From NCBI GenBank assembly GCA_047495785.1, contig JBLDXI010000042.1, positions 2,976,001 through 3,040,000 of the forward strand: a stretch of DNA of 64,000 nucleotides. The letters are read 5' to 3'. The translations under genes and the position numbers were made by a program. Shown in pieces: positions 544 to 58,950 of this stretch (positions within the stretch are counted from its first letter, which is position 1; each line of letters opens with the position of its first letter). The DNA is from Lepidodermella squamata. Lineage: Eukaryota; Animalia; Gastrotricha. The notes under the pieces are model-generated. The model saw nothing but the letters and a program-made list of their open reading frames with translations. It ran no database searches and had not been told where the DNA came from.

Positions 544-2187
544 ATGAATGAATGCTGGCGAGAAAATCGGAAATATCTCCAGTTGAAGCCCCGTGTTGCA
601 ACTATTTTGAATCGGTCGTCCAAGTACTTGAAAAGGAAGCAGAAAAAGGAAGTCATTTTCAACCGTCGACCGATCAGCCACTACCGGCCTCTAAATTTAC
701 GCCGAAACGGCAGTAATTTAAACACTGGGAGTACTGAAGACCCGAGTCTTAGTTTTCCTGGCTCCTTCGTTTCAACTTTGATCTACATCCCGCAGGTCCG
801 CCGCTTGATCGTTAGCAAACTAAATTCACTTGAAGATGGAGCAATGAAGTGTTTAATAGCTTACGTCGGAAGTTTGAGAAAAACTGACCTTGACTTGTTT
901 TTCCGAAATGTGAATTTTCCCCAAAAAGTTATGCTAGATTCTACCTCATTCGCCAGTCATTTTCTCGACTACCTCGAAAAGCTTCTGGGAAGCGAAATAT
1001 CTTCGCTATTTCTCGGCAAGTACTGCCGTCCTGGAGGACTGGAGTTCAATTTCACACAGCTCAATGTTGTTGTGCCTGATTTGAAGTTCAAAGCTGAAAT
1101 AAGTTTCCACTGGATCATTTCGGAAAACTTTCAAGGTGATGCGAAATTATCTGCTCTACCGAAAGTTTTATTGATCCAACTGACTCGGCTGGACTGCTGT
1201 TCAATATCGATCCATTTTCCGAACAAGCTTCTTTTCCCTCAATGTTTTTCGGGGTTAGCAAATATCCCTATCTACAATTTGATGACAATTTTTGAGTTGG
1301 ATGGTCAAGATGAAAACAGCTATCAGCACTCGGTCAAAATTCGAAATCTATTCAACAGCAGAATTTCGCCTTGGTTAGTTGGAGAAATGATTGGACCGGA
1401 TCAAAATGCGGCTTTTCTGGTTTCGAAAAACGCCTATGCAGTGTTATACGTCGCAGGAGATATTTTGCCACAAAATGCTAGACTAGCCCCAGGCCCTACA
1501 CCTACACCGACCCGATGTGAACGATCAGGTGCGAGAGAGATGGTTTTCAAGCTAGACCTATTCAATCTGAAGCCTGGTCGCCGCATGAGTCCGGCGGTAC
1601 TAGACAGTTATATCGACTTGATCATTCGTCACTCGAATAAGGAAATGTTCGCTTTTAGCTGGAAATTTATACTGAAATTCCTGGAGTGCGGAATTGACGC
1701 TGCTGCGAAAATTAGTGAACCAAGCGACATCAATACTTACGATTTCTTGATTATTCCTATTTTGACGCCTCGCACTAATCAATGGCTTGTTGCTGTTGTT
1801 TACCCGGCTAATCACCGGTTATTGTTCTACAACCCTGGCGTGGATACCGTCGGTCCAGTCGGCGAGGAATACTCGCCTATAATCGTCAAATGCCTCGCCT
1901 TACTTCGAGATCTCCGCTTCTGGCGTCGTAATTTAAAACCTCCTATTGTCGAGGAATTATGGACCTCCGACGAGTATCTTTCGGGTAGTTTCCCTCGCCA
2001 ATCGAGAGTTGAAGATAGCGGCGTTTTTGTTGCGAATTTCGTTCGGTGCCTGGTTGAACAACACGGCGACTACCTAGCTGAGATTCATTTCGATTTTTCG
2101 GCCGAGGGAATCGACTTGGCCAGAAATAAGATGCTTGATGATTTGATTAGTTTTCACTTTGCGCTCAATTCGAATTCAAATCGTTGA
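544..2187 (+). CDS. Pseudo-USP (C19) + pseudo-Ulp1/SENP (C48) fusion protein, paralog 1 (intronless)
   Basis: 547-aa ORF. USP-fold motifs: SEISSLFLGK, LPKVLLIQLTR, SIHFPNKL, YNLMTIF, AYAVLYV; the Cys box and His box are degenerate. C48 motifs: VLDSYIDLI, FAFS, DFLIIPI..NQW, LFYNP, PRQSRVEDSGVFV; the catalytic H/D/C positions are Q/N/S. Confidence 0.8.
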   Translation: MNECWRENRKYLQLKPRVATILNRSSKYLKRKQKKEVIFNRRPISHYRPLNLRRNGSNLNTGSTEDPSLSFPGSFVSTLIYIPQVRRLIVSKLNSLEDGAMKCLIAYVGSLRKTDLDLFFRNVNFPQKVMLDSTSFASHFLDYLEKLLGSEISSLFLGKYCRPGGLEFNFTQLNVVVPDLKFKAEISFHWIISENFQGDAKLSALPKVLLIQLTRLDCCSISIHFPNKLLFPQCFSGLANIPIYNLMTIFELDGQDENSYQHSVKIRNLFNSRISPWLVGEMIGPDQNAAFLVSKNAYAVLYVAGDILPQNARLAPGPTPTPTRCERSGAREMVFKLDLFNLKPGRRMSPAVLDSYIDLIIRHSNKEMFAFSWKFILKFLECGIDAAAKISEPSDINTYDFLIIPILTPRTNQWLVAVVYPANHRLLFYNPGVDTVGPVGEEYSPIIVKCLALLRDLRFWRRNLKPPIVEELWTSDEYLSGSFPRQSRVEDSGVFVANFVRCLVEQHGDYLAEIHFDFSAEGIDLARNKMLDDLISFHFALNSNSNR

Positions 2188-2278
2188 TTTTCTAATTTTG
2201 TTATAATTTTTCGTATTTTATGCATTTTTTGTACTTGGTGATGAAATTTGACTTGCTATTTAGGGATAATAGATTAAG

Positions 2279-3970
2279 ATGAAGCCGATAATTTTGTCGC
2301 GTGTCATTCGCTCAGTGGAGGTGCAAAATCCTGATGTGCTGCGGAGACCCGGCGAGTCATCTGAATTTCTGATTTCAAAAATGAGAACACCTTACCAGCT
2401 TCCTAAACCACGGAAGCTAACGCAAAGACCATTTGAATTGAAGCGGGCGAAGATACCTATTATTGTTGGCAGATCGCTTGATTTACAGGATGAAGTCCAA
2501 AATATCGGCGCTGAAATGAATGACGACCCGAGCCTCACTTTTCCTGGTTCATTCATTTCAGCTTTGATCAATATTCCGTATATTCGAAAATTGATCGTTA
2601 GTAAAACTAATTTACTTGAAGATGAGGCAATCAAATATTTGAAAGCCTATGCTGAAAGTTCGAAAAAAGCTGACCTTGACTTGTTTTTCCGAAAACTGAG
2701 TTTGCCGCGAAAAATTCTACTGGATTCTACCTCATTCGCCAGTCATATTATCGAATTTCTCGCAAAGCATTTTGGCGATGAAATTTCTTCGCTTTTTCTC
2801 GGCGAGTGTCGCAGACCTTCAAAGCAGAGGGGTTATTGGAGCGTGGCCAAATTTTCTCAGCTAAATTTCATTGTGCCAGACTCGAAATTCAATCAACAAC
2901 TCTCTTTTCAATCGATTAGTTTGGAAAACTTGAAAAATGATGCGGAAATAACCTGCCTGCCAAAAGTTTTGTTAATTCACTTGACTCGACTAGACCCGTG
3001 TTCAATGTCAATTCAATTTGCTAACAAGCTGCGATTTCCCGCGGGAATTTTCGCTGGATTGCCAAAAGTTCCTGTCTATAACTTGATGGCGATTTTCGAG
3101 CAAGAAATTATCGATGAAAACATCTATGAATATTCAATTAAAATTCGAAGTACACTCAATCAAGGTATTCCACAATGGTTGATCGGCGGAGCCCTCGGAC
3201 CCTGGCGATATGCGTCGCACTTTGAAGACCCGCTCGTGTCGAAAAACACTTACGCTGTGTTGTACGCTACGGAAGAAATTACCGGTTTCTTCCAAAATTA
3301 CGAAGCTAATATTGGACGATTAAATGACGCGCCCTTACAATACGATTTGTGGAAATTGGCAGCCGGGCGCGGCGTCACTTCGAGGGTCTTAGATGCCTAT
3401 CTCGACTTGATCACCCGTCGCTCAAATGGAAAATTATTCGCGTTCAGCTCGCATTTTTTCTCGACTTATTTGTCTCACGGTATCGAGGCAGCTGCAAAAA
3501 TCAGTAATCCGACTGGCTACCATTATAAAGATTTCTTGATCATTCCAATAACAGATTCAACTCGAAGTGATCAATGGCAAGTTTGTATCGCCTACCCGGC
3601 TTATAACCGGTTATTGTTCTACAACCCGGGCGTGGTTGCTCTCGGTCCAATTGGGGATAAATGTTCGCCTGAAATCGTCAAATGTCTCTTCTTACTTCGC
3701 GATCTGCAGGCCAGACAGTCTAACCAGGGTCCTCTTGACATTGAGGAATTATGGAACTCTGAAGAGTTTATAACAGGCAGTTTCCCTCGCCAATCGAGAG
3801 TTGAAGACAGCGGTGTTTTTGTTGCGAATTTCGTCCGATGCCTGGTTGAACAACACGGTCGCCTAGCGGAAATACATTTCGATTTTTCGGCCGAGGAAAT
3901 CGGCGAAGCAAGAAATCGGATGGTGTACGAATTGAAAACTTTATTGTTTCCGATTGTGAAACTGGGTTGA
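2279..3970 (+). CDS. Pseudo-USP + pseudo-Ulp1/SENP fusion protein, paralog 2
   Basis: 563-aa ORF colinear with paralog 1: DDPSLTFPGSF, LPKVLLIHLTR, DFLIIPI..DQW, LFYNP, PRQSRVEDSGVFV. Confidence 0.82.
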   Translation: MKPIILSRVIRSVEVQNPDVLRRPGESSEFLISKMRTPYQLPKPRKLTQRPFELKRAKIPIIVGRSLDLQDEVQNIGAEMNDDPSLTFPGSFISALINIPYIRKLIVSKTNLLEDEAIKYLKAYAESSKKADLDLFFRKLSLPRKILLDSTSFASHIIEFLAKHFGDEISSLFLGECRRPSKQRGYWSVAKFSQLNFIVPDSKFNQQLSFQSISLENLKNDAEITCLPKVLLIHLTRLDPCSMSIQFANKLRFPAGIFAGLPKVPVYNLMAIFEQEIIDENIYEYSIKIRSTLNQGIPQWLIGGALGPWRYASHFEDPLVSKNTYAVLYATEEITGFFQNYEANIGRLNDAPLQYDLWKLAAGRGVTSRVLDAYLDLITRRSNGKLFAFSSHFFSTYLSHGIEAAAKISNPTGYHYKDFLIIPITDSTRSDQWQVCIAYPAYNRLLFYNPGVVALGPIGDKCSPEIVKCLFLLRDLQARQSNQGPLDIEELWNSEEFITGSFPRQSRVEDSGVFVANFVRCLVEQHGRLAEIHFDFSAEEIGEARNRMVYELKTLLFPIVKLG

Positions 3971-4055
3971 TTTTTTATTCATTATATTTTGATATTTTCG
4001 ATATAAATTTTTGATAATTTTTATTAAATGTTGATACAATAGTGCATTTAAAAAC

Positions 4056-5573
4056 ATGAAGCCGACAATTCTGTCGCTTGTAATTCGTTCGGAAGAAAAG
4101 CAAAATTCGATTAGACTGAGAAAATCCGGCGAGACATCTGATGAGATGGTTTCGAAACTGAGCAAGATCACTAATTCGCCGGATTTTTCAAGCATTCCTG
4201 CCCTGAAACCTACCAAATTTGGCAGCGAAATCGTTGAAGATCCAAGTCTAGGCTTCCCAGGCGGTCTGATCTATGCCATCGTTCAAATACCGCCGATATT
4301 TCACATGTTGCAGAGCTGTTGGCCGCAAAGTGAATCGATGAATAAACTTTTTTCATACGCGACAGATTTTCGGAAATGTGACCTGGACGGCTTCTTGGAA
4401 AGTTTGAAATTCAGCAGGAAAACGATGCTGGACCCTGTTTTGTTCGCGAGCGAGTTGATGAAGCATCTCGGCGAGAAGTTCGCGACCCTTTTCTCCGGAA
4501 AATTCGCAAATTCCGCCCGTGGCATCAAGGCAGAGACTTTCAATCAGCTTAATCTCATTGTATCGCCTCAGAGTCATAATCTGACCATGTTGAAAATTTT
4601 ATTAGAAAATTTCCGTGAAAATGTGAAAATTGTTTGCTTTCCAGAGCTGCTACTGATGCATCTGACGCGATCAGATGATTGTTTGATGCAAATTTCCTTT
4701 GTTGACCATTTAACTTTTCCCGGGAAATTGATGTTGAGAAATGCGACTAGTCCTTCTTACAAGTTAGTAGCTGTTTTCGAGTTGAAACAATCAGGAGAAG
4801 AGGATTATCAGCACTTGGTGAAGATGCCTTTCCTACTTCATAGCAACCGTGTAAAAACTCGCCGCTTCACATCTAGTGATGCTTTTGCTGTCTTGTATGT
4901 TAAGGAGGAATTTTTATCATGTGAAGGCTTCAAAAATATTAAAGGTGACACTCGAATTTCTAAGCATGAATTTGCTAATTTCATTGCCGGCCTTGGTGTT
5001 TCGCCGTCTGTAATGGATGCTTACCTAGGAAAAATTATTTGTGCCTCAGCTAATCCGCGAATATTTTGTTTCGGCTCGGATTTCTATCCTAAATTCACTA
5101 ATCAAGGAATTTTCGCTGCTTTTAAGCTGGATAACTCTTTCAAAATGTCCCACTACGACTTCATGATCATTCCTATTTTTGACCCTCTAACGACGGTCTG
5201 GTACGTCGCAATTGCTCTCATGCGAAGTCGCGGCGTTCTTTTCTACAGCCCATTCGGATTAACTGGTGATCGAAAGTACGTTACAAATATTCTGAAATTC
5301 ATGCAACTTCTCGAGGAATGTGAAGCGTCTGTTTCAAGTAAAGTAGTTGGTAAAACTCCTCAGTGGTTTGAAATCGGTCCAGTTCTTGCGGAAGTTCCGA
5401 GCAACGTGCTGAAGGCTGATATTGGCCTTGTTATTGCGAAATTTGTGCGTCGTTTTGTTGAAAGTAGTACTGGCGACAATCCTCATGTCTACTTCAATTT
5501 TTTGATTGAAAATGTGAATGAAGAACGAAGTCGAATGATTGATGCGTTGAACGGCAGTTTTGATACTGAATAG
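4056..5573 (+). CDS. Pseudo-USP + pseudo-Ulp1/SENP fusion protein, paralog 3 (most divergent)
   Basis: 505-aa ORF. N-terminus MKPTILSLVIRS matches paralog 2 (MKPIILSRVIRS). Motifs: EDPSLGFPG, FPELLLMHLTR, YKLVAVF, DFMIIPI..TVW, LFYSP, DIGLVIAKF. Confidence 0.8.
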   Translation: MKPTILSLVIRSEEKQNSIRLRKSGETSDEMVSKLSKITNSPDFSSIPALKPTKFGSEIVEDPSLGFPGGLIYAIVQIPPIFHMLQSCWPQSESMNKLFSYATDFRKCDLDGFLESLKFSRKTMLDPVLFASELMKHLGEKFATLFSGKFANSARGIKAETFNQLNLIVSPQSHNLTMLKILLENFRENVKIVCFPELLLMHLTRSDDCLMQISFVDHLTFPGKLMLRNATSPSYKLVAVFELKQSGEEDYQHLVKMPFLLHSNRVKTRRFTSSDAFAVLYVKEEFLSCEGFKNIKGDTRISKHEFANFIAGLGVSPSVMDAYLGKIICASANPRIFCFGSDFYPKFTNQGIFAAFKLDNSFKMSHYDFMIIPIFDPLTTVWYVAIALMRSRGVLFYSPFGLTGDRKYVTNILKFMQLLEECEASVSSKVVGKTPQWFEIGPVLAEVPSNVLKADIGLVIAKFVRRFVESSTGDNPHVYFNFLIENVNEERSRMIDALNGSFDTE

Positions 5574-5676
5574 AAATTTGAAATTTCATGGACATTATTT
5601 TCTTACTGAGTTTTAAAAATTTGATCTACTTCGCTTTTATTTTCTGCCCTTTTAGAGGTTCTATTTTGATTTTATC

Positions 5677-7704
5677 ATGACCTCTTTGTCTACCTCACTG
5701 GAATCTCAAAGCGAAGACCAGGTTTGAAATTTTTTAAACGGGATACTTATTTTCAGCTCGAAATAATTGGAATATTTGATTGCTTCGGATTCTATTGTAA
5801 AGAAAATGAAATTAATTCATTTTATTTTTCACATTTTCAGCAGAACGCTTGTCCAGTTTGCATGCGGTACTACACCGATCCGCGAAGTCTCCCTGCCTGC
5901 GGGCATGTCATCTGCCTAACTTGCGCTTCAAAATTAGCTGGACCTCTAACTTACATTCACTGCCCTGTGTGCCAAGCTTACAACTACCTGGGCGATCAAG
6001 GTGTGAATGAGCTGAAAAGCGCACTCGTCGCTTATCGACCTAACGACTCGATAGCTAATCCGACTTTTTCGGGATCTAATGGCAGTTTGGATTTCGGTCC
6101 CGCTTCTGAGATTTCAGATGGCACAATTTGTCAACATCGTACCTCAAAATCTGGTTCAAGCTGCCAACACTGCAGTCAAAAATTCTGTCTGAGTTGTGAA
6201 ATTAATCACAAGGAAAGAATCAAACTTGAAATAATAGAAATGGCTATTCGGGTATTTTATTTTTCAATTCCTGATCTCTGAATTTGGATAATTATTTCAG
6301 GCTGGCTCAACTGTTGGAATCGAAGCTGGTATTCGCCTGAAATGTTCAAGAAATATCGAACAAGTGAAATCGGAAGTCCTGCAGTCATTTCAAGAAATCG
6401 AAGATGACTTTTTATGCAAACTTGAACAACGTAAAACTATCATACTCGAGCGGCTCGATCAATTGGGAGCGGAAAAAGCTGGAAAACTGGCGAAAATCGA
6501 CATCAAAGCCGACCCGGGTATGCTAGCCTTGGCCCAAGCCCTGCCCAGTCGATCTGTTCTAGCAATCAGTTTGAATGATCTCGCAGTTCTGCATCAAAAA
6601 ATTGCAAATCAGGTGTGGTTTTTTTGAAATCTTCTAATTTTAAGGTGGATTTTTGAATTTTTCTAGATACGCGAAAGTGAACACAAAGTGGCAGAAGAAA
6701 TGGGGAAGGAAAGCATAAACATAAATTTCGATGTTTTGCTGCCTGGAGTTAGCTTCAAACCTATGCCTGAAAGGCATTTCGAAGTTGCGAATTGGGTGGC
6801 GGAAAAGTCTCCCAAAACTGAGATAGCCGAGATCCCGCAGCCGAAACCAGAAATCTTGTCATCGCCTGCAAGTCCGACCAGCTCAAGTGGAAAGCTTGAA
6901 GAATCGGATCAACCACCTGTAAAGCGGTCTAAAAATGGGCAAAACGAGAAGGCGAAAACTCGTTTAGCCTGTTGTGAGCTCGTTCAAAAAATTCAAACTG
7001 GCAACCTAGATTTGGTGAAAAATTTCTTCGCAAAACACAGCGATTGGTCACCGTCATTCATCGGTTCGATGATTGAATCTCGCGAAAATGGCGAATTCAC
7101 TGCCCTCCACACCGCAGTTCGTAAGGGAAATCTCGAAATTGTCAAATTTTTGATCGAGGAATGCTTCGCGAATCCGCTGGCGTTGACAAATGACGTTAAA
7201 GCGAACTGCCTTCATGTTGCAGCTGCTCATAACCACCTTGAAGTTTTTCGCTATATCGCCCAGAGAAATCCGTCGCTTTTGACTAGCGTTAATAAATTCG
7301 GCGTAACAGCACTTCACACCGCGATTTCGCACAACGGGTTTGAAATTGTGAAGTTCCAACTTTTTGCCTTGCGTGTCGATCCGAACATAAAAACGGGCGG
7401 GGACGGGAAATCAGCTCTTCATTTCGCATCGGCTCATTCTTCGATTCAGATGGTTCAGTTGCTGATTTCAGCCGGTGCCCACATTTACGCGAAGGATAAT
7501 TACGGGAAGCTTCCGATTCATGCGGCGGCTCAAAGTGGCGCCGATGCGATTGTCAATTTTTTCCTGCAAATCGACCCGCGTCTAGCATTGGCTGTTACTA
7601 CGAAAAACTGGACCCCGGCGCAAGTCGCTCGAAACAAGGGCCATCAGAATCTGGCGAATGCTCTTCAACGATTCGAAGCCCGCATAACTGGATGTGGAAT
7701 TTAG
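5677..7704 (+). CDS. TRIM-like RING/B-box/coiled-coil protein with C-terminal ankyrin repeats, copy 1
   Basis: Exons 5677-5721, 5841-6251, 6301-6612, 6667-7704 join in frame across GT-AG introns. C3HC4 RING CPVC...CGHVICLTC...CPVC; B-box-like CQH...CQHC...CLSC...H; helical region; about 6 ankyrin repeats (TALHTAV, TALHTAI, SALHFAS, LPIHAAA). Confidence 0.88.
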
Positions 7705-7865
7705 CTTAGTTTCATCGAGGAGAAACGAGTGACTTTTTCTATATTTTTTCAATTGATTTGATATGAATTTTAGTTATTTTCTGTTTTTCTCAATTTCAAC
7801 CTGATTTTGTGCTTGACATTTTTTCATTTTTTTCAGTAAAATTAGCTATTTTCGTAGGTTTTACA

Positions 7866-8289
7866 ATGCCACAGATTAGGAAGCTTGACGAGTTTGACTC
7901 AGATTTCGAAAGTTCAGTCATCAATCATTTTCTCTTTGTTGGTTTGAAGGCGATCGCCCCCAGGTATGTTTCCTCGGAATCCGCTTCGGATAGTGTAAGT
8001 CCAGACCAATACGATTCGCCATATTTTATTCGAAATTTTTGTTCAGATTTCCGATGATCCGGCTCGCCATGTACGCGTAAAGACGCCGTTAGTTGGCAAA
8101 TCTGGCTTGTTGGTCCAGAGAAGGTGCCGTGACTGTGTGGCTATCTTGAAGGCTTTGGGTTTGAATGGTTACCTCGAAACTAGAAAATTCGCGATGGCTA
8201 CTTATCTCGTGTGCGACGGCTGCCCTTCGAAGCCCTACCTTTGCTTGCGTTGCTTCGAGCGCCACAAATCTCAGCTTAACTCTTCTTAG
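7866..8289 (+). CDS. Stand-alone piggyBac-type C-terminal cysteine-rich (zinc ribbon) domain protein A
   Basis: Exons 7866-7994 and 8047-8289. SDFESSVINHFL...ISDDPARH...RRCRDC...TYLVCDGCPSKPYLCLRCFERH. Confidence 0.78.
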
Positions 8290-8413
8290 TCGATAAAGTG
8301 GACTAATTTATATATTTCGCTATTTTTATACCCTTCGCATCACGGCTTGATTAATAATTTTATTGCTATTCGAATTTCATCGTTTTGTAATTTTAGTGGC
8401 GGATTTTGATTCG

Positions 8414-8828
8414 ATGGCTTTGACTAGAATTACTACCGAATCCGATTTTGAAGTGGTTTTGATTGACTACCTTTTGTTCACCGGCTTGAAGTCTTTAGGA
8501 AACAGGGTGCCTGCTAAAATTTTAGCCGCGGAAAAGGACAGCGTAATTTCGTTTAAAAATTCGCGATTTTATTTCTTGATGTTTTATTTTACAGAAAATT
8601 AAGGGTGACTCAGATCGGCACGTGCGCGTTAGGACGACTGTTCGAGACCAGAGTGGGCAGTATCAGAACAAAATATGCCGCAGCTGTTGTTTGCTTCTGA
8701 AATTACTCGGGATCACGTTTCAGATAGCCGCCAATCGTTTCGTTTACAAAACGACATTCGTTTGCAATGGGTGCCCTTCAAAGCCTCACATTTGCCCTCG
8801 CTGCTTTGAACGTCACTTGCAACATTGA
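8414..8828 (+). CDS. Stand-alone piggyBac-type CRD protein B
   Basis: Exons 8414-8542 and 8595-8828. SDFEVVLIDYLL...ICRSC...TTFVCNGCPSKPHICPRCFERH. Confidence 0.78.
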
Positions 8829-8983
8829 AATGATTTTCAAGTTCTATTTTTCATGTTTCATATTTACAGTTTTGCCTATTCAATTTTTTATTTAAGTCTC
8901 GGAAATTGATAATATTCGTAGCTCGTAGCGGTGTTTTTTCAATTATCGATTCTACCTTTTCATCCTTCGTAGCTCTCGTGTAA

Positions 8984-9409
8984 ATGACCGGAAATAGTTT
9001 TTCGTCTGATTTTGAACCGTTTTTCGTCGAATACCTCCTTCATGTTGGTATGGGCGCTGTTCCGCCGCATTACTTGCCTAGATCCACCATGGAACTTGTG
9101 GATAAAGTGAGCAAATCACGATTTTCCCTCCGAAACAGAAAACATTCTTTTTAGGTTGTCGATGATCCGGGCAACCACAAACTGGTGAGAACCGCCTCGC
9201 GGTTCAGCAATGGTCAACCTCAAAGGCTTGCGTGCCGTCATTGCCGCGCTCTCTTGTCCGCCCTGGGGTTTTCTTGCCATCAAATCAACAAATATGTGAA
9301 AACGGTCATTTATGTGTGCGATGGGTGCCCATCGAAGCCTGCCCTATGCGGAAGATGCTTCGAGCGCCACAAAATCGTGCGAGAAGAATCGCCGAACAGA
9401 AAAAATTGA
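8984..9409 (+). CDS. Stand-alone piggyBac-type CRD protein C
   Basis: Exons 8984-9106 and 9155-9409. SDFEPFFVEYLL...VVDDPGNH...ACRHC...YVCDGCPSKPALCGRCFERH. Confidence 0.78.
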
Positions 9410-9592
9410 TGACCCATTTTCATTCGCATTTTATTTTTTTATCAACTCGGCGACATTTCTTTTATATAATATGAAATTTCTGAGATCTGAGATTTTATCT
9501 AAATTTTATAAAATCATGTTTCAACGGTAATAAAATAGTAAAAATAGGGAATTTTCGATCACAGAAATACAATTTATATCGCTAACCTCTTA

Positions 9593-10012
9593 ATGAACCC
9601 GGAAGCGTTAAGTGTCGCTACGAAAAACGATTTTGAGTACGCGTTTATCGAATACTTGCTGCAAACTGGTTTCATCGCATTACCTCCCAATTTAAATCCG
9701 AAAAAATTAGTGGCCGAACTGGAATCGGTGAGTTTTCTCTCTCGTTTTCAACTAATTCTGATTTATACATTGTTTAAGATTTCTGATGACCCAGACAATC
9801 ATGTGCGAGTTAAAACAACTATTTTGGGTAGAACCGGGCGGCCAATTCAGCGATTTTGCCGGAACTGCTGCGCCCTCATCAGCGCTCTTGGATTAACTAG
9901 CAGAGACCACAAAAGAATGTACATTTGTTATACGCGTTACGAATGCAGTGGTTGCCCGTCGAAACCGCCCTATTGCCAGCCGTGCTTTGATCGCCACAAA
10001 TCTTCTAAATGA
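9593..10012 (+). CDS. Stand-alone piggyBac-type CRD protein D
   Basis: Exons 9593-9727 and 9779-10012; the 51-nt intron is in frame within the ORF. NDFEYAFIEYLL...FCRNC...TRYECSGCPSKPPYCQPCFDRH. Confidence 0.78.
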   Translation: MNPEALSVATKNDFEYAFIEYLLQTGFIALPPNLNPKKLVAELESVSFLSRFQLILIYTLFKISDDPDNHVRVKTTILGRTGRPIQRFCRNCCALISALGLTSRDHKRMYICYTRYECSGCPSKPPYCQPCFDRHKSSK

Positions 10013-10081
10013 AATATTTTCCACCTGAATTAGAGCATGATTTTGTTTGCTTTTAGCCCAGTTTTGTTGACAGGCTTCGAA

Positions 10082-10487
10082 ATGAAAAAATCTGACGATA
10101 AATCTGATTTCGAAGTTGCGTTTATTTATCACCTCCTTGATACTGGCTTGAGATCTCTATCACCTCGGCATATTCCAACTCGGCAAGTTCAGGAGCTAGA
10201 AACTGTGAGTAAATTTTTCCAACATTTCCTACCAAATATTTAGTTTTTTTCAGATTTCGGACGATCCTACAAAGCACATTCGCGTCAAGGTTAGTGGAGG
10301 CCCCGGCGGTAACCTTGATCCTGTGTATCGAATCTGTCGAAATTGCCGTGTTTTACTCATGACTTTTGGGCTTCCTTACAAAAAGATAGAACACTATGCT
10401 GGGAAAACTTTCTACGCTTGTGAAGGCTGCCCATCGAAGCCGCACTTGTGTCTAAAATGCTTCGAACGGCACAAGCAAACGAGCTAG
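10082..10487 (+). CDS. Stand-alone piggyBac-type CRD protein E
   Basis: Exons 10082-10204 and 10254-10487; exon 2 is absent from the ORF track. SDFEVAFIYHLL...ISDDPTKH...ICRNC...TFYACEGCPSKPHLCLKCFERH. Confidence 0.78.
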
Positions 10488-10551
10488 ATTTTCGTTAAAT
10501 ATTTTTCGTAATTTTATGGAATCTGATTTTTAGGAATAATTTTTATTACGA

Positions 10552-13500
10552 ATGTTTGATAATGAGGAATTTGTTGTGGTCGACGAAGATGAACCGTCAA
10601 GTAAGAAGCGAATGATTGATGTAAGTGAAATCAATTTTTTCTTTTATTTATTTTTAAAAGTATTTTTCTTCAGCCAACAATATGTCAAGTTTGTCGAACT
10701 ATTTTGAGGGTACCAAAAATCTTGCCGAATTGTGGCCATTGTTTCTGTTTGGAATGCTTGAATAAGTCGATCACGCCTAAAGCACCCCATGGAGAGATTG
10801 CCTGCCCGGAATGTTCGGTTGCTAGCAAACTCGGCTCAAGTGGTGTCTATGGTAATTAAGTCAATACTCTTTCATTTCATATTCATTCTTGCAAGTGAAA
10901 AGTGAGGTTTGGCGAAAACTTCGAATTTGTTGAGAAAATCGGAAGATTTTAAAGGCTTTAAAAAGGAGTCCTTCTACCAGAACCAAATTGACGGTGAGCG
11001 GAACCATATTTGCCCTCGAGCGAAGCCCGATTTCGGTATTTTTAATTGCCCGAGAACATATTTTACAGGGTGCCATGGTTGACCCATATAATTATAAATA
11101 AATTGACATTAAATTCAGCGTAAAATTCTACGTACGACTTAGTTTTCAATTCTGAAGTCATTTTTTGCCTCAAATTCTTGAAATTATTTGAAAAGGGACA
11201 CTTCATATTTTGGAAATTTTGAGTTTGGTTCCGCTAAATAATAGGTAATCTGCTTTGAAAAGGGCGATTCCCATCTTTCAATGTGGCACATTTTGAAATT
11301 TGTGTTCTCCTTAATCTCCGTAAAGTCTTCCCGTTTTGCCGGCTTAATTTTACGAATTTTTGACCACCCCTCACGATTCCTCACCTTTTTAAACCCATTA
11401 GAAAATTGATTGAGCAGAAGATGAGTACTTGTACATTTTCAGAAGAGGCGCCCGACCGCATCATAAACAGGCGCGTGTTTGACACGGCCATAGAAAAAAT
11501 TGGCTCGGATTCATAAGTTTTTTTTAGGATTTTTTTTTAAGAATGAACGCGTGTTTAACGGAACGTTCATTCTGGCGTTTTTTCTTGACGATCACGCCAA
11601 TCAATAATGACAGATAGCTAGAGCTTGCTGTAACCATTCGAATTTCGGTCCTAATTTACGACGGTTTCAAGTTTACCCACCGAAAAACAAATGGAGGAAA
11701 AAATACTGATCGTGATATGGACAGCCTTTCAGAATCACACTGTAGATGTCATTTTATCGTTTGAGTAATTTCTGGTATTTAATACAGGTCTCAAGACAAA
11801 TTTTCCTCTTCAAAAAGTGGCTGAGTTGTTTCGCGCCGAGGAGAGTGGTTTTGCCCCGATGGGACTCCCCGAAGCTTGCCGGCACGTTTACCAGTCTGAA
11901 TCAGCAAATTCTAGCTCGAAAATTTGTGAGCATTGCGTATTGCCGTTTTGTCAAACCTGCCTTCGGGGACACCACGAAATTGTAGCCAAACAGGCCATTG
12001 ATACGTACAAGGTCACAATGAGCCGGTTGAAGTACTGCTTCAATTCTGCGGATCCTAACGAAATTTCAGAATCCGTCGAGAAGGCAGTGATTTCCAAGGC
12101 GAATGCGGCTAAATTGATGGCTCAGCTTGAAATTGAACGGGTCAAGGAAATGATCAATGAAAAATTGCGGGAGAGATTGGCAAAAATGGAGTTCGAAATC
12201 GATACTGTTGCGAGTGGGAAATTGCAGGAGATTCGCAAGTCGTTTGGCAAACTCGGCGACTTGTACTCGTCTTTACAAGCCAAATCAAGCCTGCTGTCAA
12301 CGTCCCCCAGGGCTATGTCTCTTACTGAGCTAGCAACTATGCATAACGAAAACGCTTTTGTTGGCCAACAGGTATGTGCAGTTTTTATCTCGAAGATTTT
12401 TTAGATTTCTTAATTCTTTGATTAAATTATATTCACGATAAGACTTCATTGAAGTTGATTATCATCTAAAAATCGTGTGTAACCTTGCGTTCGGTCCTTG
12501 AGATATGCTTGCCGAAATTTTGAATTTTTTTCAAATTTCTGAAAAATTTAGGATTACTCGCTTATTATCGTAAGAATGAGCGTATTACGCTCAAGACAAG
12601 GGGCTTGATAAATAGCCTAGCAAAAAACCAGATCCAGAGGATCTCACTAGTGGGAAATTCGATAAACTGAGCCGCGTATCGATCCAATACAGAAATTTTT
12701 ATGGCAGACGAGTCACGTGTTTCGAAATTTTTCCAATAATAGATGGGAAATTAAAATCTCCAACCATGCAAAAGACACCAGAAAGATAATATTTAATATT
12801 TGGAGACCTTATATGGGTGAGATAGGTGATTGGTAACATCAAAGAAACAATAGAAGTGAAATCAATTTGAAGGAAAAACAGAAAGCGTTGACTACCGGCC
12901 CTAATATCACCGAAGCTTCTTGCTTCCAGCCTGAGTCAACACATCAGAGAAAAATCGACGTAGCCATAAAAGCAAGGCTCCGGGCCCATCGTAGTTCCGT
13001 CCAGCCCCAAGTGTCGGATGCGATAAACAGTAATTCAACAAGAATAGATCGATATGGTCGGTCCTAGGTCCTTGCTGTCGCCTGATGTCATGTTGCGGGA
13101 TGCCCACTAACCATTTCTATGTCGTCCTCGATTTTCTGAGCTGCGGTGTCCCAACTGAGCTTAGCAGCCGATCCTGGTGCTCGGATTCTCTGGCAAATGA
13201 CACGTATCACACCGAGACACAACCCGTGAAGGTAGCCGGGGACGGTTTCTTCTATTACATTGTAGAAAAGTAGGCGAAACAGTGGTCTCAAGTTGTAGGT
13301 ACCCTCCGTTTCAACATTGCCTTTATATGTGCCTCCGGATTCGTCGAAACGTTGCTTAGATAGTAGCATTGCTAGTTTTTCAGACTCGTAAGTTCGAAGG
13401 TCTAAAGGGGCTCGGAGCTTCGCCCTCTCCCGGAAAAATGACAGTACTATTGCAACCATATCTATAGGAAGTCGAATTAGAATATAAACTGGCAAATGTT

Positions 13501-16019
13501 TAGCCGTGGCAAGTCAGGCCTGGAATTCAAAATTGAAGCTAATTATTAAAATACCTATATATCAACAGTTATTAGCATAATTTACGAAGAATGGCTGGTG
13601 CAAGACTGGAAGAAGACCATTCATTAAACATCGCTGTCTTCAGTTAAACTGCTGCTTTCGTTTCCGCTGAGCTCCAGGTCGCCTTGAGCTTCTCCGTTGT
13701 TATTTTCTTCTTGACGCTGACTTTCTTCGTCTTCTTCGTTAGGTACCACCTCGGCTGTTGTGATCGGCAATTAGGGCCGAGTTGCCGGAGCATGCGCATC
13801 TTCTCTTGTTTTCTTGACGGCCGTGACGGCATGGCTGGGCTGCGGATGGTCAAGCAGCGGTTGGCCAGTCAGTTTGTGGTTGGCCGAGTTGCGATTTTCG
13901 CTGTTTAATCTTATGGTGTTATAAGCGGCTTTTGGAGTATGCAAGTTGTTTTTGGTTTCAGCTGTCACGGTTGGGTTTAGCCTTGATCCTTTGATCCTTC
14001 AAATGAAATCGCCGAATTGCAAGTAGTTGATTAAAATATTCGGCAGCAGCAGGGCGATTAAATCCTCCTCATGCTCGTCAGGTAGAAATTATATGGTGTT
14101 TAAATGTGGATTGCGACCGACCCTCAACTTCTGCATTGTATTTCACGAGATTAGCCGCATGACAACGTTTATCAGTTTTCTGGTAGTTTTTACAGCTGCG
14201 CATCATCAAAGCAAGAGGACAGGGATGGTGGGAATAAATTTAGTGCGATTCTCAGTGTTTCTCAATGGATAATGCCAACTTCTAGCTTTCATATTTTCAT
14301 CAAGCAGCTCCCACTTGCTACCAGTGGAAACCTCGGGAACGCGTCTCGCTAAGTTCAACTGTTTTAACACGGCATAGGCCTCGTCGCTCTAAATCCCACT
14401 GATTTCCTCGAATAACCTCGTTCAGTCGATGGATGGTCGCGAACCCGGCAAATAGGCTCACCGTCCTCGTTGGTTCGTTTTAGACACCTCTCCCCTGCTT
14501 TCAGACAATCATTCCTTGCTAGTTGTGGCATCAATTCATGTAAATGATCGAGGTCCTCAAGGTCGTCGGCTAAACCATCAGCAGCCTGAGCAAAAGATAC
14601 AACTGGGAAACTACTGATAATCTTCGTCACTTCATCGTGCTTATTGTTATCAAGTTTCTTCGTTGATGGGTATTGCCTAAAAGAATAAGCTGTAAACCGT
14701 TAACCGCAGAAAATTTAGTTGCTGAATTTCAGTAACTCGGTGCTAGAGATTTTCAGTGTTACATTGTTACAGATATTGAGTCATTGCGGTCGGTCGCTGT
14801 CGGGCCAGAAGTCCCGAGTAGGTTCAGTAGAGCAGAGAAAGTGCGAGAAGGTGCATTGTTATTCTGCCGTTTTGTAGCTCTATTCAGCGCCGTTTGGAGC
14901 GTTTAGAGCCTCTCACATCTCTCATAGCCAGGAACAACTGTTCCCCCGTCTCTTGTAGCTCGCCCGATAGGGTTAGCGTTCAGCCGATTTCGAAATTTGT
15001 TTGGTCCTAATATCCGTGTACTTATATAACATTTATTTTAGATTGAAGTGTGCCAAAAATTGAAATCTGAGATCGATAGCCATAGCATCGAACCAAGTAC
15101 GTGTGACCTCGTTCCGCCCGTCATTGTCAATGCCCTCGATTCGGCTCCTTTCAAACCCTCAGCTTCTTGGAAAGAGAGTTCGACCGATGAGGTAATTTGG
15201 TCAAATTGTTTAATCGCTAATTGTTTAATTCAATATTCATTTGTTAAACAGGTTCTATGCGCCTCGAGAGACGATTTAATTCGAGAAGCGACCAACGGGA
15301 ATGCTGAATTTTTCGAAAATCTCCTACCCAAAATTTGGTCGCTGCGGCAGAAAATCAGCCTCCGAAAATTGGCCGAGACGCGGGAGAAAAGTCGATCAGA
15401 CGAGCCCACCCTTCTGCACCTTGCTTGCATCTCCGGTAATTTTAAACTCGTAAAATGTCTGGTCGAGAAATTTTGCGCCGATATCGGGGTTAAAACCGCC
15501 GATCGGAAATTGACCCCATTCCACACGGCCTCGTTGCACGGCCATCTTGAAATCGTCGAGTATCTCACTCAATTAGACCCTGAACAGCCGTCGATTAGAG
15601 ACGAATTCAACACATCAGCTCTTCACATGGCTGCGACGCGAAACAAAGCTGAGGTAGTTGAGTTTTTAGTCGAGAAGGGCAACGCTGAGATTGAGGCTCG
15701 GGATTCATTCGGGCGAACTCCGATGCATTTAGCGGCGAAAAAGAACGCGATTCGCGCCTTCGAAACGCTGTGGCGACTCGGCGCTGACGTCACAGCGGTC
15801 GATGGGCAAAATCGCAGTCCATTGCATGTCGCATGTGCCGCGGCTAGCTCTGACATTGTCCGTTATTTGTTGGAAAAATGCTGTAAATCGCGGTTTTTCC
15901 ACGAGTTGTTGAATAAGCGGGACAGTGCCGGCCTGACTGCGGCTCGATTGGCACGGCGGAAAGGCCATGACCATATTGTTGCTCTATTTTCAAAATCGTC
16001 ATTGTCTCCAGATTCGTAA
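10552..16019 (+). CDS. TRIM-like RING/B-box/coiled-coil-ankyrin protein, copy 2 (with two large repeat-containing introns)
   Basis: Exons 10552-10620, 10674-10851 (RING CQVC...CGHCFCLEC...CPEC), 11788-12371 (GLKTNFPL, B-box, coiled coil), 15042-15191 and 15252-16019 (ankyrin repeats) join in frame. Same architecture as copy 1. Confidence 0.8.
11078..11240. repeat. Interspersed repeat, copy 1 (intronic)
   Basis: Shares attaaattcagcgtaaaattct, aattattt.aaaag and tttggttccgctaaa in the same order with 59693-59875. Confidence 0.65.
13088..14690 (-). mobile_element. Decayed, frameshifted Helitron-like Rep fragment inside intron 3 of TRIM-ANK copy 2
   Basis: Minus-strand pieces read NDCLKAGERCLKR..ICRVRDHP / WHYP..FIPTIPVL / RSCKNYQKTDKR..ANLVKY, resembling the region around Helitron Rep motif III (Y..KY). 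Frameshifts separate the pieces, and the intron is about 50 times the local norm. Confidence 0.4.
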
Positions 16020-21424: not shown

Positions 21425-23283
21425 ATGTATCGTTGTCAAGATTGGAGAACATGCCTGGACGAAACAGACATAGAAATGGCGCGATCGACAAAGGTAAGAA
21501 TTAATACGGGCCCTCAGGATAAAATTAAAATGTTTGGCACAGTGCCATGGATTACTAAGGATGTACATTATTGGAGGGGTTATTCGCAGAACTGCATGGT
21601 GTTTGCTAGTAGCTGGATCTCTGTCCTTATTTTTCTACTTGGTGAGTGACCGCGTGCAGACTTTCGCGGCTTTTCAGTTGAAGACCGACGTTTCGACTGT
21701 TTACGAACACAAAATGCGATTCCCTGCAGTCACTATCTGCAACTTCAACATGTTCTCCTCGAACCTGATGAACAGTTTCGACTATCAATTGGTCGAGAAT
21801 GTTTCCCTAGGGCTAGCCATTGAAGTTAAAATGCTGAATGCATCAGCTATTAATTTAAATGGGAGCTTGGACTCTTTACTTGAAAAATACAACACTGTCG
21901 AAAGGGATCTCCGCAAGAGATATAACGGTTAGCTAACTTGAAAAATGTATTCCTAACGCAATGCTAATGACTTCATTCAGTCACATCATTCAATACAAGC
22001 GCTTGGATGGATCGAAAAAGTTGGCAACTGAAACCGGAAGTTTTTGAGTGCAAATTCGGGGAACAACCATGTGGCATTGAGGTACCCACAATTAATACGA
22101 AGCTTTCTTCAATTTCTAAAATTCAATGAATTCCAGAACTTTACGACGACGCTCACTCGATATGGGAAATGCTACGCATTTAATTGGGAGCCAGATATCG
22201 ATAGATTCCAAGTTTGGCCCGGTTCGAGTGGCGGTTTGTCGTTGCATATAAACATAAATCAGGTAGTTTCGGGGTTTACATGGCAATCTGTAACACTGTA
22301 AATGTCCCAGGATAATTATACACCTTACCGATTGTTTGGGGAGCTGCAGACAGCGGTATGTAGACGCAAGTGTGTTGGGGTTCGACGTACAAAATGTCCT
22401 TCTCTAGGCTGGGATAAAAGTTATTCTTCACGAGCCCTCAGAACCGGCTGACTCCGCTTTTGGAATTGCTGCTATGCCTGGTTTTACTTTGCACTTACCC
22501 CTTCGTACGCAGATATTCGAGACAGTGAACAACGCGCCGTGGAATGTTTGCGGGGACAGGTCTCTATTTAAAGGGCAATTCAAGTTTTACAGCCTGAAGG
22601 GCTGTTTCGCTCTGTGCGCAGCTACACTTTACCTTGTTAAATGCAACTGCACTCCGTGGTTTCTGCCCCAACTGGATGAGCAACTAGGCTTCGATAAACC
22701 CAATCAGCCTGTGTGTTCCATTGCAGAAACTACTTTCTGCGAGCAGGTCAAAATATCAGAAGATGACCGGTTGAAGTGTGTCAATGATTGTGCGGAGGCT
22801 TGTAAGAGCTACGAATATGAATATAGCCCATCTTATTCTCAATATCCTATACTTACTAAAAGTGCTTTGAATTCATCTCAGCTGAGCTCGGGCAACGGGA
22901 CCTCAGATCTGAAAGGTAGTCGCTTTCGAAATGACTGGTTGAGGGTCAAAGTTTACTACGAGCAGTTCCGAACAGTCTCTCGGCGAAGTTATGAAGCCTA
23001 CACATTCAGTCAATTCCTGGGTGAGATCTACAGCACTTCTTCGTTATTTGCTGGCTTCAGCGTGATAACGTTTTTCGAATTGCTGGAATATCCTTTCCTG
23101 AAAGTTTATCGCCGATGGCTTTGGCCTATATGGATAAAGCGACAAATGAGGCTGCAACAAAGTAGGCGAAGAGATCCTGTAGCCACAGTCAGCGATAATG
23201 TTGACAAAAAAGAAAGACATGGTATGGATTCCCTAGTAAAAATTTTCGTAATTTCTGCTGCGGCGCGTAACACAGCAGCGTGA
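21425..23283 (+). CDS. DEG/ENaC (ASIC-like) amiloride-sensitive channel subunit
   Basis: Spliced: STK|CHG pre-TM1 motif, TM1, FPAVTICNFN, YGKCYAFN, GLSLHININQ, GIKVILH, Cys-rich thumb, TM2 LFAGFSVITFFELLE. At least 6 exons. The 3' end may splice at 23222 to a short last exon near 23328-23420. Confidence 0.9.
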
Positions 23284-58226: not shown

Positions 58227-58950
58227 TCAGTTGGTGCAGCCATGGCGCAACCGTTCATGGCGCCGCTTCTCGCCCATTTGTCGAAAATGGGTGTCGCAGT
58301 AATCACAGGAGAATCTGTAGATACCCTCATGAATCAGCCGATGCATTGTCAGACTATATGAAAATACACGAATCATGTAAAGAAAATCAAGGTTAAACAA
58401 GGTGGGATACTTACCCGAATTTACGAGCGAAGGCACGGTCGCAACGATCGCATTTGAACGGGCGATTGCCTGGGTCATGCGTCATCAGATGGTAATTGAG
58501 ATGTGTCTCCTGTTTGAAAGCTGCACGGCAAATAGTACAGCGGAACGGCTTCTCGCCAGTGTGAATTCGGCGATGATTCTTCAGCATGTGACTCTTTTTG
58601 AACCGCTTCGGGCAGTATTCGCATTGAAACGGCCGCGAAGCTTTGTACTCTTCTGAGTTGAAATCAACAAGACCATTGCGGTTGTTGGGCCCTGGTTGCC
58701 GTATCACGTCAGGATCGATGATTACTGGCCCCTTATGCGACGAGTGGCTGCTTGTTGACGTCGAGCTTGGTGATGAACAATTAGATTCAGACCGAATTTC
58801 CGAAACATCAAGCTCTGTCGCCACGAATATCGAACCACAGTAACCGGCAGGTTGGGACACGTCTACAACCGTATCGCATAGCGAGGCAATGTGGTAGATG
58901 GCCGGATTTGCCAGAAGTCGTGTTTCAGGCAAGCTGAAAAAGCGCTGCAT
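58227..58950 (-). CDS. C2H2 zinc-finger transcription factor (4 fingers)
   Basis: FQCEYCPKRF..H...HTGEKPFRCTIC..H...H..FKCDRC..FG|LTMHRLIH..FSCDYC..H....H. One intron at about 58355-58414. Confidence 0.88.

Follow-up and report, generated by a model that had tools for sequence, protein, structure and literature searches.

Five tandem genes of the gastrotrich Lepidodermella squamata are predicted to encode only the zinc-binding tail of a piggyBac-superfamily transposase

Gene models and transcripts

The window, a stretch of 64,000 nucleotides, carries at positions 7866-10487 five genes in tandem on the + strand, each consisting of two exons and encoding a protein of 118-125 aa. The gene models are as follows.

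g1 exon 1: 7866-7994, + strand, 43 aa; N-terminal, acidic, carries the amphipathic D-F-E helix motif (ATG-to-donor model)
g1 exon 2: 8047-8289, + strand, 80 aa and stop; predicted piggyBat-type CRD with ligands H, CxxC, CxxC, CxxC, H (g1 protein, 123 aa)
g2 exon 1: 8414-8542, + strand, 43 aa
g2 exon 2: 8595-8828, + strand, 77 aa and stop; CRD (g2 protein, 120 aa)
g3 exon 1: 8984-9106, + strand, 41 aa
g3 exon 2: 9155-9409, + strand, 84 aa and stop; CRD (g3 protein, 125 aa)
g4 exon 1: 9593-9727, + strand, 45 aa; GTGAGT donor, TTTAAG acceptor
g4 exon 2: 9779-10012, + strand, 77 aa and stop; CRD (g4 protein, 122 aa)
g5 exon 1: 10082-10204, + strand, 41 aa; GTGAGT donor, TTTTTTTCAG acceptor
g5 exon 2: 10254-10487, + strand, 77 aa and stop; CRD (g5 protein, 118 aa)

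All five genes have their own ATG and stop and, as an earlier note on this DNA had claimed, an intact frame. The introns (52, 52, 48, 51 and 49 nt in g1 to g5) are all in phase 0 and fall at one column of the protein alignment, again in agreement with that note. Donors read GT[AG]A and acceptors (T)nCAG, TAG or AAG; the g4 intron is in frame and contains no stop. Upstream of the ATG, an in-frame stop is found within 3-102 nt in each of the five genes. The number of copies in the 64 kb is exactly five, on which tblastn, a six-frame motif scan and an HMM scan agree. DNA similarity between the copies (60-80%) is restricted to the coding sequence, the introns and spacers being unrelated. The five units are a real gene family, neither a chance pattern nor a recent repeat. 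Two paralogous RING...ankyrin genes lie either side of the five genes, and three Ulp1-like ORFs are located upstream of them. All are on the + strand, in a cluster of ten genes with gaps of 64-183 nt and an acceptor-like site 11-29 nt before each ATG. Rfam and tRNA scans and an Atlas query with a DEG/ENaC exon pointed no further than to an animal, possibly nematode-like.

Expression was assessed with the Logan contigs of one RNA run. For g1, a contig joins 7994 to 8047 and another, 8133-8295, passes the stop codon; the g1 allele in this run has an in-frame 6-nt insertion just before 7989. For g2, a 496-nt contig made up of 8366-8540 and 8595-8846 lacks the intron (8543-8594) and continues past the stop into the 3' UTR. 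Contigs cover g3 at 9155-9254 and 9306-9486, and a loose end at 9108 continues as the first bases of exon 2, giving a junction between 9106 and 9155. RNA depth is 2-3 over g4 and about 2 over g5 exon 1; in this run g5 exon 2 has no coverage and neither gene shows a splice junction. The expectation that the genes are expressed was borne out for g1, g2 and g3 by correctly spliced junctions, and is barely supported for g4 and g5, which have low depth only. The spacers between the genes are also covered by RNA contigs. Since the RNA runs through the g1 and g2 stop codons with only the predicted intron removed, the exons are not joined into one long protein, an alternative that the earlier note had raised.

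The CRD and the exon-1 helix

Exon 2 contains 19 residues that are invariant across the five paralogs, including H8, C27, C30, C56, G58-C-P-S-K-P63, C66, C69, F70, R72 and H73. Eight zinc ligands are predicted from the sequence (H8, C27, C30, C56, C59, C66, C69 and H73) and are invariant in all five. Seven of them, H8 to C69, align by column with the ligands of the transposases P0005-P0007, and the last His occupies the same column or lies one residue further on. Twenty-five residues separate the first CxxC pair from the second, 1-2 more than the 23-24 in these transposases. An upstream His followed by seven Cys/His, with the spacing of piggyBat, PLE-wu, Pgm and PGBD2-4, is the ligand pattern described previously (PMC8086355).

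The earlier note took this domain for the C-terminal tail of piggyBac transposases and proposed a search with PF13842 (zf-Tnp_2). The search placed g1, the best paralog, at 23.7 bits (E 7.3e-5), 0.3 bits below the gathering score of 24 bits, with g3 at 17.6 and g2 at 15.7 bits (E from 7e-5 to 0.02 for g1-g3); g4 and g5 did not match PF13842. Alignment of the CRDs to transposase CRDs with hhalign, the latter having been retrieved with the same profile, gave a probability of 99% and an E of 4e-18. A profile search of 1.84 billion (1.84e9) proteins returned only 8 matches, of which three fall at the very C-terminal end of PF13843 piggyBac transposases and four in short CRD-bearing proteins. P0002, one of these four, was rejected as an independent mini-gene, being the tail of a decayed full-length piggyBac, and the short match P0003 sits on a 927-bp contig and is uninformative. 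The best-scoring match, P0001, proved to be a low-complexity repeat artefact. Among the 1.84 billion representatives there was no relative closer than the transposase CRDs, and a word-indexed search of a 5.8-billion-cluster collection with g1 exon 2 and the five-paralog profile yielded no relatives of 44-140 aa. In a phylogenetic tree the five genes group together, separate from the transposases, with support of 99/100, except that the very long-branched fragment P0008 is drawn into their clade. The assignment to the piggyBac tail held, with an alignment to transposase CRDs and with profile matches to piggyBac transposase C-termini and fragments of them. The five genes very probably derive from a piggyBac-superfamily transposase with a CRD of the piggyBat/PGBD2-4/PiggyMac type.

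The AF2 model of g1 exon 2 (pLDDT 91.4) has the DNA-bound piggyBat CRD, 9c0f, as its top structural match, and not an unrelated zinc finger, which the earlier note had considered. The g4 model represents the intron-retained in-frame translation, not the spliced protein; its CRD part (pLDDT 88-96) has the same order of secondary structure as g1. The small beta-sheet and cross-brace binuclear site of the piggyBat CRD are present in the predicted structure. Searches of AlphaFold DB and ESM Atlas return predominantly entries for PGBD4/2/3 and for the 'PGBD4 C-terminal zinc-finger'. An ESM Atlas search by features gave only uninformative matches (scores < 0.8), the T. ni piggyBac CRD is not among the structural matches of the mini-gene CRD, and a PDB sequence search with the family profiles gave chance-level matches only (AVRA6, uS19 and the PRT6 UBR box). 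According to these models the domain adopts a treble-clef fold with a binuclear cross-brace, as in piggyBat and PiggyMac, so that the earlier description as a zinc-ribbon CRD was correct in naming a piggyBac CRD but not in naming a simple zinc ribbon.

Variation among the paralogs is concentrated in two loops, exon-2 residues 11-26 and 39-53, where identity is 15-28% compared with 70% in the scaffold, which confirms that the segment between CxxC pairs is variable. The CRDs are strongly basic (pI 9.3-9.8) and exon 1 is acidic. piggyBat, whose DNA contacts include R543, E545 and loop 495-502, is too divergent from the paralogs for HMMER.

The alignment of exon 1 from the five paralogs shows an invariant D-F-E followed by the hydrophobic pattern x2-[FLV]-[IV]-x-[YH]-[LF]-L. 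The proposed likeness of the DFExxFIxYLL helix noted earlier to the FRxxLxxxL helix of transposases is positional only, as comparison of exon 1 with the pre-CRD regions of transposases by hmmsearch and hhalign found nothing significant (hhalign E 0.19). Exon 1 had no matches in Pfam. In g4 a helix is predicted for residues 11-27 at low confidence (pLDDT ~61-65), and this N-terminal part of the read-through model is to be read cautiously.

Domestication and possible DNA binding

Between paralogs pS is 0.73-0.86, that is, saturated, pN is 0.40-0.45, and the zinc scaffold is invariant. Owing to the saturation of dS, the dN/dS analysis that had been proposed only bounds omega between paralogs. Saturated dS also implies that the paralogs are ancient, which would accord with stable host functions no less than with an arms race. 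Allelic variants comprise 14 synonymous and 12 non-synonymous changes (pN/pS ~0.25) and no stops. The only coding indel, of 6 nt, preserves the frame, and the non-coding indels are of 1-2 nt. The DDE_Tnp_1_7 (PF13843) core is absent throughout the 64 kb in tblastn searches with three piggyBac transposases, the matches being to their last 20-87 residues and only in the five genes. No TIRs or TTAA-flanked ends were found around any unit or the cluster, where the inverted-repeat search gave only chance-level pairs of 14-31 nt. Both absences had been claimed in the earlier note, and its view of the units as domesticated rather than decayed is supported by saturated pS, intact frames under purifying selection and spliced RNA from g1-g3. 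The host appears to have recycled a transposase tail as genes of its own, and the five units have the character of host genes rather than of elements in decay.

The best explanation of the locus as a whole, to which we give a probability of roughly 0.6, is a domesticated CRD-only family whose products would bind DNA and might, less probably, inhibit piggyBac. The source would be the 3' end of a piggyBac-superfamily transposase gene, subsequently duplicated in tandem. The C-terminal CRD, preceded by an acidic amphipathic helix and a linker of ~25 residues, would have been retained, and the catalytic DDE core and transposon ends lost. The CRD of piggyBat binds DNA site-specifically, as a dimer on a palindrome (PMC11707139), and an isolated CRD fragment of T. 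ni PB binds specifically to transposon ends (PMC5861402). In PiggyMac the related CRD has no DNA-binding activity and shows weak binding to the histone H3 tail (PMC8086355); possession of the fold is thus no guarantee of DNA binding. By analogy with the first two, DNA binding by the mini-gene CRDs is the likelier outcome; it would be sequence-specific and probably involve a dimer on palindrome-like sites, as with piggyBat. The fixed zinc scaffold, combined with the diverged loops, could give each paralog a separate target, the likeliest being the subterminal sites that CRDs bind in the piggyBac families of the same genome. There the mini-proteins would compete with transposase for binding, as KP-repressor-like inhibitors. 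This repressor role is a tentative suggestion made by analogy. Still more doubtful, and argued in the same way, is a host battery of CRD-only decoys in which the loops of each paralog would be adapted to the end motifs of one particular resident piggyBac family, different from paralog to paralog.

The KP repressor of P elements and the THAP-domain proteins offer a parallel. KP is a truncated transposase derivative in which a site-specific DNA-binding domain (THAP) is combined with a short helical segment; it is catalytically inactive and can sit on the binding sites of the transposase. Its likeness to the mini-genes is limited to this presumed mode of action. KP belongs to a different superfamily, has a THAP fold and represents the N-terminal part of the transposase, whereas here it is the C-terminal part. 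KP also arises by internal deletion in elements that have ends, while the mini-genes contain introns, lack ends and form a tandem array.

Other known systems are related in structure or origin. piggyBat (Myotis lucifugus; PDB 9c0f) and human PGBD2, PGBD3 and PGBD4 have the same type of CRD, which here stands alone in proteins of 118-125 aa without the DDE_Tnp_1_7 core. Paramecium PiggyMac and PgmL (PMC8086355) are likewise domesticated piggyBac derivatives with a His + 7 Cys/His binuclear cross-brace, and form paralog families with divergent CRD sequence on a fixed zinc scaffold. However, Pgm and the PgmLs retain the whole transposase body, and Pgm has an acidic CRD that fails to bind DNA, in contrast to the basic, CRD-only proteins described here. 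Capture of a transposase DNA-binding domain by the host is also seen in host-transposase fusions (Cosby et al., bioRxiv 10.1101/2020.05.07.082677). In these fusions and in arthropod BTB (lola-like) proteins, which carry PF13842 in an ESM Atlas cluster and place the CRD fold outside transposases, the captured domain is joined to KRAB, SCAN or BTB; here there is no recognisable host domain and a tandem expansion instead. The CRD of T. ni piggyBac (PHD-like cross-brace; PDB 6x67/6x68) is similar in its position in the transposase and its role in subterminal repeat binding (PMC5861402), but differs in Cys/His order and topological fold (PMC11707139).

Alternative explanations and significance

The piggyBac origin could be correct and the domain nevertheless be a protein- or histone-binding module, as in PiggyMac. 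The five genes would then act together with the RING-ankyrin and USP/Ulp1-like genes beside them, co-transcribed from one operon-like cluster, perhaps as adaptors in a ubiquitin- or SUMO-related pathway. A precedent is the Pgm-type CRD, which shares the ligand pattern and attaches to the H3 tail rather than to DNA. The position of the five genes between the RING...ankyrin genes and downstream of the Ulp1-like ORFs, the single strand, the short gaps with acceptor-like sites and the RNA coverage of the spacers would all suit an operon. We consider this explanation unlikely, as the mini-gene CRDs are basic (pI 9.3-9.8) while the non-binding Pgm CRD has a pI of 5.48 (PMC8086355), and among solved structures the nearest is that of the piggyBat CRD in complex with DNA. 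In trans-splicing animals, genes that share an operon often have unrelated functions.

The units could also be remnants or cargo of piggyBac, either 3' fragments of decayed transposases or accessory genes in a large element. Short 'CRD-only' proteins are common in the databases, and at least one of them (P0002) is the C-terminal piece of a decayed transposase. At this locus, however, no DDE remnant lies beside any unit and no TIRs surround the units or the cluster. All five genes have kept an ATG, the common intron and intact frames despite saturated synonymous divergence, allelic differences are skewed towards synonymous sites with the sole coding indel in frame, and spliced transcripts are present. 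The remnant or cargo explanation is largely refuted by these observations and very improbable.

Convergence of an unrelated finger (UBR-box, ZZ, LITAF or B-box like) on the CxxC...CxxC pattern would account for sub-threshold Pfam matches to zf-UBR, ZZ_ADA2 and zf-LITAF-like (E 0.0035-0.03), which cover a partial domain of ~20-60 residues, and for a profile match to the PRT6 UBR box (E 0.31). Against the hhalign alignment to transposase CRDs, the 9c0f match and the PGBD4-type database matches it is hardly credible, and is refuted unless the AF2 model is wrong. Finally, the single strand, the close spacing and the stop-free g4 intron might suggest that the ten exons make one long multi-CRD protein, or the units might be unexpressed pseudogenes, but we dismiss both, as a stop codon ends every unit, the g1 and g2 stops are kept in RNA (8133-8295 and 8366-8846) from which only internal introns are removed, and in-frame stops precede each ATG.

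To our knowledge, the piggyBac genes domesticated to date (PGBD1-5, PiggyMac/PgmL, Tpb) still carry the greater part of the transposase. The literature that we could search describes no gene family formed by capture of just the CRD; such capture is visible only in automatic annotation, in short proteins labelled 'PGBD4 C-terminal zinc-finger', of which many are probably fragments, and in arthropod BTB fusions. At this locus a CRD-only family has a gene structure of its own, is expressed (g1-g3) and has been under long-term constraint. If its products do not bind DNA, it would still be a clear case of a small, new zinc-finger family made from a transposase tail. The piggyBac element is widely used in genome engineering. 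Should the proteins bind piggyBac ends, they would constitute a natural protein inhibitor of piggyBac, and would supply five naturally diversified piggyBat-type variants from which to learn how the loops read DNA. The decoy battery, if true, would be the first natural protein-based, sequence-specific piggyBac repressor system, comparable to KP for P elements but in the form of a fixed, expanded multigene family. Binding to piggyBac ends would also make the family a testable case of a host that turns a transposon's DNA-recognition module against the transposon.

Gene structure and transcripts of the CRD genes

We inspected window positions 7500-11000 and enumerated GT...AG introns that preserve an open frame. 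This gave five tandem genes, g1-g5, with a common two-exon plan:

g1: exon 1 7866-7994, exon 2 8047-8289; + strand; 123 aa
g2: exon 1 8414-8542, exon 2 8595-8828; + strand; 120 aa
g3: exon 1 8984-9106, exon 2 9155-9409; + strand; 125 aa
g4: exon 1 9593-9727, exon 2 9779-10012; + strand; 122 aa
g5: exon 1 10082-10204, exon 2 10254-10487; + strand; 118 aa

The introns (48-52 nt, phase 0) occupy an identical column of the protein alignment, bearing out the earlier note's description of five mini-genes (here 118-125 aa) with a common phase-0 intron and intact frames. Exactly five copies were found in the 64 kb by tblastn, six-frame motif scan and HMM scan, and their DNA similarity (60-80%) is confined to coding sequence. 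Exon 1 encodes 41-45 aa (pI 4.4-6.0) with an invariant D-F-E, after which comes a heptad-like hydrophobic stretch. Exon 2 encodes the cysteine-rich domain (CRD; 77-84 aa, pI 9.3-9.8), in which 19 positions are invariant among g1-g5, including H8, C27, C30, C56, C59, C66, C69, H73 and a G-C-P-S-K-P block. The g4 intron (51 nt; gene at 9593-10012) is in frame and stop-free, probably by chance; its retention would lengthen the protein to 139 aa, adding a hydrophobic stretch of 17 residues to the linker.

Transcript evidence came from a single RNA run (X1), as Logan contigs, mapped together with a DNA-like run (X2) on 7700-10600. A 496-nt X1 contig spanning 8366-8540 and 8595-8846 represents the g2 mRNA from 5' UTR to 3' UTR; it lacks exactly the predicted intron and keeps the stop codon. 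The g1 junction (7994 to 8047) is seen in X1 on an allele whose linker has an in-frame insertion of 6 nt, and another contig (8133-8295) crosses the g1 stop codon. At the g3 junction (9106|9155), a loose X1 end at 9108 reads into the first bases of exon 2. Coverage in X2 is even across the introns of the locus. Since the RNA contigs keep the g1 and g2 stop codons and lack only the predicted introns, the exons do not make up one long protein, an alternative raised in the earlier note. Expression is thus documented by spliced junctions for g1-g3; for g4 and g5 no junction was seen in X1 and depth is 2-3 or none, so that their expression is weakly supported.

At seven "opposite strands" contig joints in X1, between 7900 and 10187 (e.g. 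7900/8049, 8282/8366 and 10082/10187), every mini-gene transcript is folded back upon itself, over 70-150 nt. The cause could be artefactual hairpins in the cDNA or unitigs, or genuine antisense or foldback RNA.

Identity of the encoded domains

Exon 2 had been assigned to the piggyBac-type zinc-ribbon CRD, with PF13842 (zf-Tnp_2, the piggyBac-type finger) as the proposed check. In Pfam, g1 reached 23.7 bits (cut-off 24; E 7.3e-5), g3 and g2 matched more weakly, and g4 and g5 had no match. Partial, sub-threshold Pfam matches to UBR, ZZ and LITAF fingers were also found on exon-2 sequences. A profile built from the five exon-2 sequences matched only eight of 1.84 billion representative proteins at E ≤1e-3, and these matches support the assignment: three are genuine piggyBac transposases (PF13843), aligned at their last ~60-70 residues, and four are short proteins carrying the same tail, one demonstrably the end of a decayed transposase. 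The eighth, a low-complexity artefact, was rejected. No relatives of 44-140 aa were found in a 5.8-billion-cluster collection. When aligned jointly with the matched proteins, the ligands H8 to C69 and the CP-x-KP...C-x2-CF knuckle share columns, the last His falling in the same column or one residue later. Comparison of the paralogs with the transposase tails by hhalign gave a probability of 99% (E 4e-18, 65 columns), the tails having been retrieved with the same profile.

An unrelated zinc finger as best structural match, another alternative from the note, is contradicted by modeling. The AlphaFold2 model of g1 exon 2 (12-row alignment) has a mean pLDDT of 91.4, and its top Foldseek match in the PDB is the piggyBat transposase-DNA complex 9c0f (probability 0.97-0.99), no other match exceeding 0.03. 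In the AlphaFold DB Swiss-Prot set PGBD4 ranked first (residues 522-577 of 585), followed by PGBD2 and PGBD3; among the 30 best fold clusters, at least 25 are PGBD or DDE_Tnp_1_7 proteins, with the match at the C-terminus. An ESM Atlas shape search returned PGBD4-like transposases and BTB (lola-like) proteins bearing PF13842. The Pfam-negative g4 CRD is predicted to fold with the same element order (pLDDT 88-96). The g1-g5 CRDs share the upstream His plus seven Cys/His ligands with the variant found in PiggyMac, piggyBat, PLE-wu and PGBD2-4; the PHD-like CRD of T. ni piggyBac is of another kind (PMC8086355, PMC11707139).

For exon 1, the invariant D-F-E helix motif stood, while its likeness to a transposase helix did not gain statistical support. 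MAFFT places the F of D-F-E on that of the transposase F-R-x-x-L-x-x-x-L helix, 17-18 residues past the end of PF13843, and hhalign finds the same register, but at E 0.19 and a probability under 1%. The linker to the first CxxC is ~14 residues longer in g1-g5 than in transposases, and the AlphaFold2 helix at g4 residues 11-27 has a pLDDT of only 61-65 in a model that includes the 17 intron-encoded residues. From sequence, exon 1 could plausibly derive from the last core helix of a transposase.

Duplication, constraint and surroundings

As the earlier note had claimed, catalytic domain and TIRs are absent: tblastn with three transposases found no DDE core anywhere in the 64-kb window, and no TIRs were found around the units or the cluster. 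Paralog pairs have saturated pS (0.73-0.86; pN 0.40-0.45), so the duplications are old, yet all reading frames and zinc ligands are intact. Mapping of X1 and X2 gave 14 synonymous and 12 non-synonymous allelic coding differences (pN/pS ~0.25 at ~3.4 non-synonymous sites per synonymous site); the variants listed include no stop codon and no ligand change, which is consistent with purifying selection. Allelic indels of 1-2 nt are confined to introns and spacers, and the sole coding indel is 6 nt. In a small tree g1-g5 group in a single clade, separate from the transposase CRDs (support 99/100); P0008, a very long-branched fragment, is pulled into it. This clade, like the common intron, fits a single capture followed by tandem duplication.

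Two haplotypes are present in X2. At 8419-8641 they have equal depth; 15 substitutions and 3 small gaps separate them over 223 nt, which points either to high heterozygosity of the organism or to diverged alleles at this locus.

At least 10 + strand genes follow one another over 544-16019, with gaps of only 64-183 nt: three paralogous ORFs of ~500-560 aa with a weak Ulp1/Peptidase_C48 match, a RING...ankyrin gene, g1-g5 and another RING...ankyrin gene. Six ATGs were inspected, those of g1-g5 and of the downstream RING gene, and each has an acceptor-like (T)nAG 11-29 nt upstream. To judge from the sequence, these gaps and sites are an operon and spliced-leader signature. Elsewhere in the window, an exon at 22474-23283 encodes the C-terminal part of a DEG/ENaC channel (PF00858 ASC; nearest Atlas clusters in nematodes, arthropods and chordates), which marks the window as animal DNA, and an ORF at 58411-58950 (- strand) encodes tandem C2H2 zinc fingers (PF00096/PF13465).

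Possible function

In piggyBat the CRD is a site-specific DNA-binding domain, two copies of which bind an imperfect palindrome close to the left end, mostly via loops (PMC11707139), and a T. ni CRD fragment on its own binds transposon ends specifically (PMC5861402). The PiggyMac CRD is acidic and does not bind DNA (PMC8086355), whereas those of g1-g5 are basic. The segment between the CxxC pairs had been described as variable; paralog variation is concentrated in two exon-2 loop segments (mean pairwise identity 28% at residues 11-26 and 15% at 39-53, versus 57-70% in the zinc knuckles). By analogy, these observations suggest that the proteins bind DNA sequence-specifically, with targets that differ between paralogs (probability roughly 0.6). 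Their most economical target would be the CRD-binding motif of resident piggyBac families, which would make them competitive repressors of the type of KP, the truncated P-element transposase that keeps its DNA-binding domain; we regard this extension as rather doubtful. The main rival is a non-DNA role, which might be tied to that of the flanking RING-ankyrin and Ulp1-like genes, with which g1-g5 appear to form one operon-like + strand cluster.

The CRD itself is already known, and captured CRDs occur in arthropod BTB proteins (ESM Atlas shape search). CRD-only proteins are plentiful in automatic annotation, many of them probably transposon fragments. That such proteins arise as annotation fragments is shown by P0002, one of the short profile matches (98-aa called gene on a public 53-Mb scaffold, GCA_008802855.1; L001 region 4790-6297), which is the C-terminal end of a piggyBac transposase that has decayed, with the DDE core immediately upstream in different frames. 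Our literature search found no description of a stand-alone, expanded and constrained CRD gene family or of a CRD-based piggyBac inhibitor. Evidence that the proteins bind piggyBac ends or inhibit transposition would make g1-g5 far more interesting.
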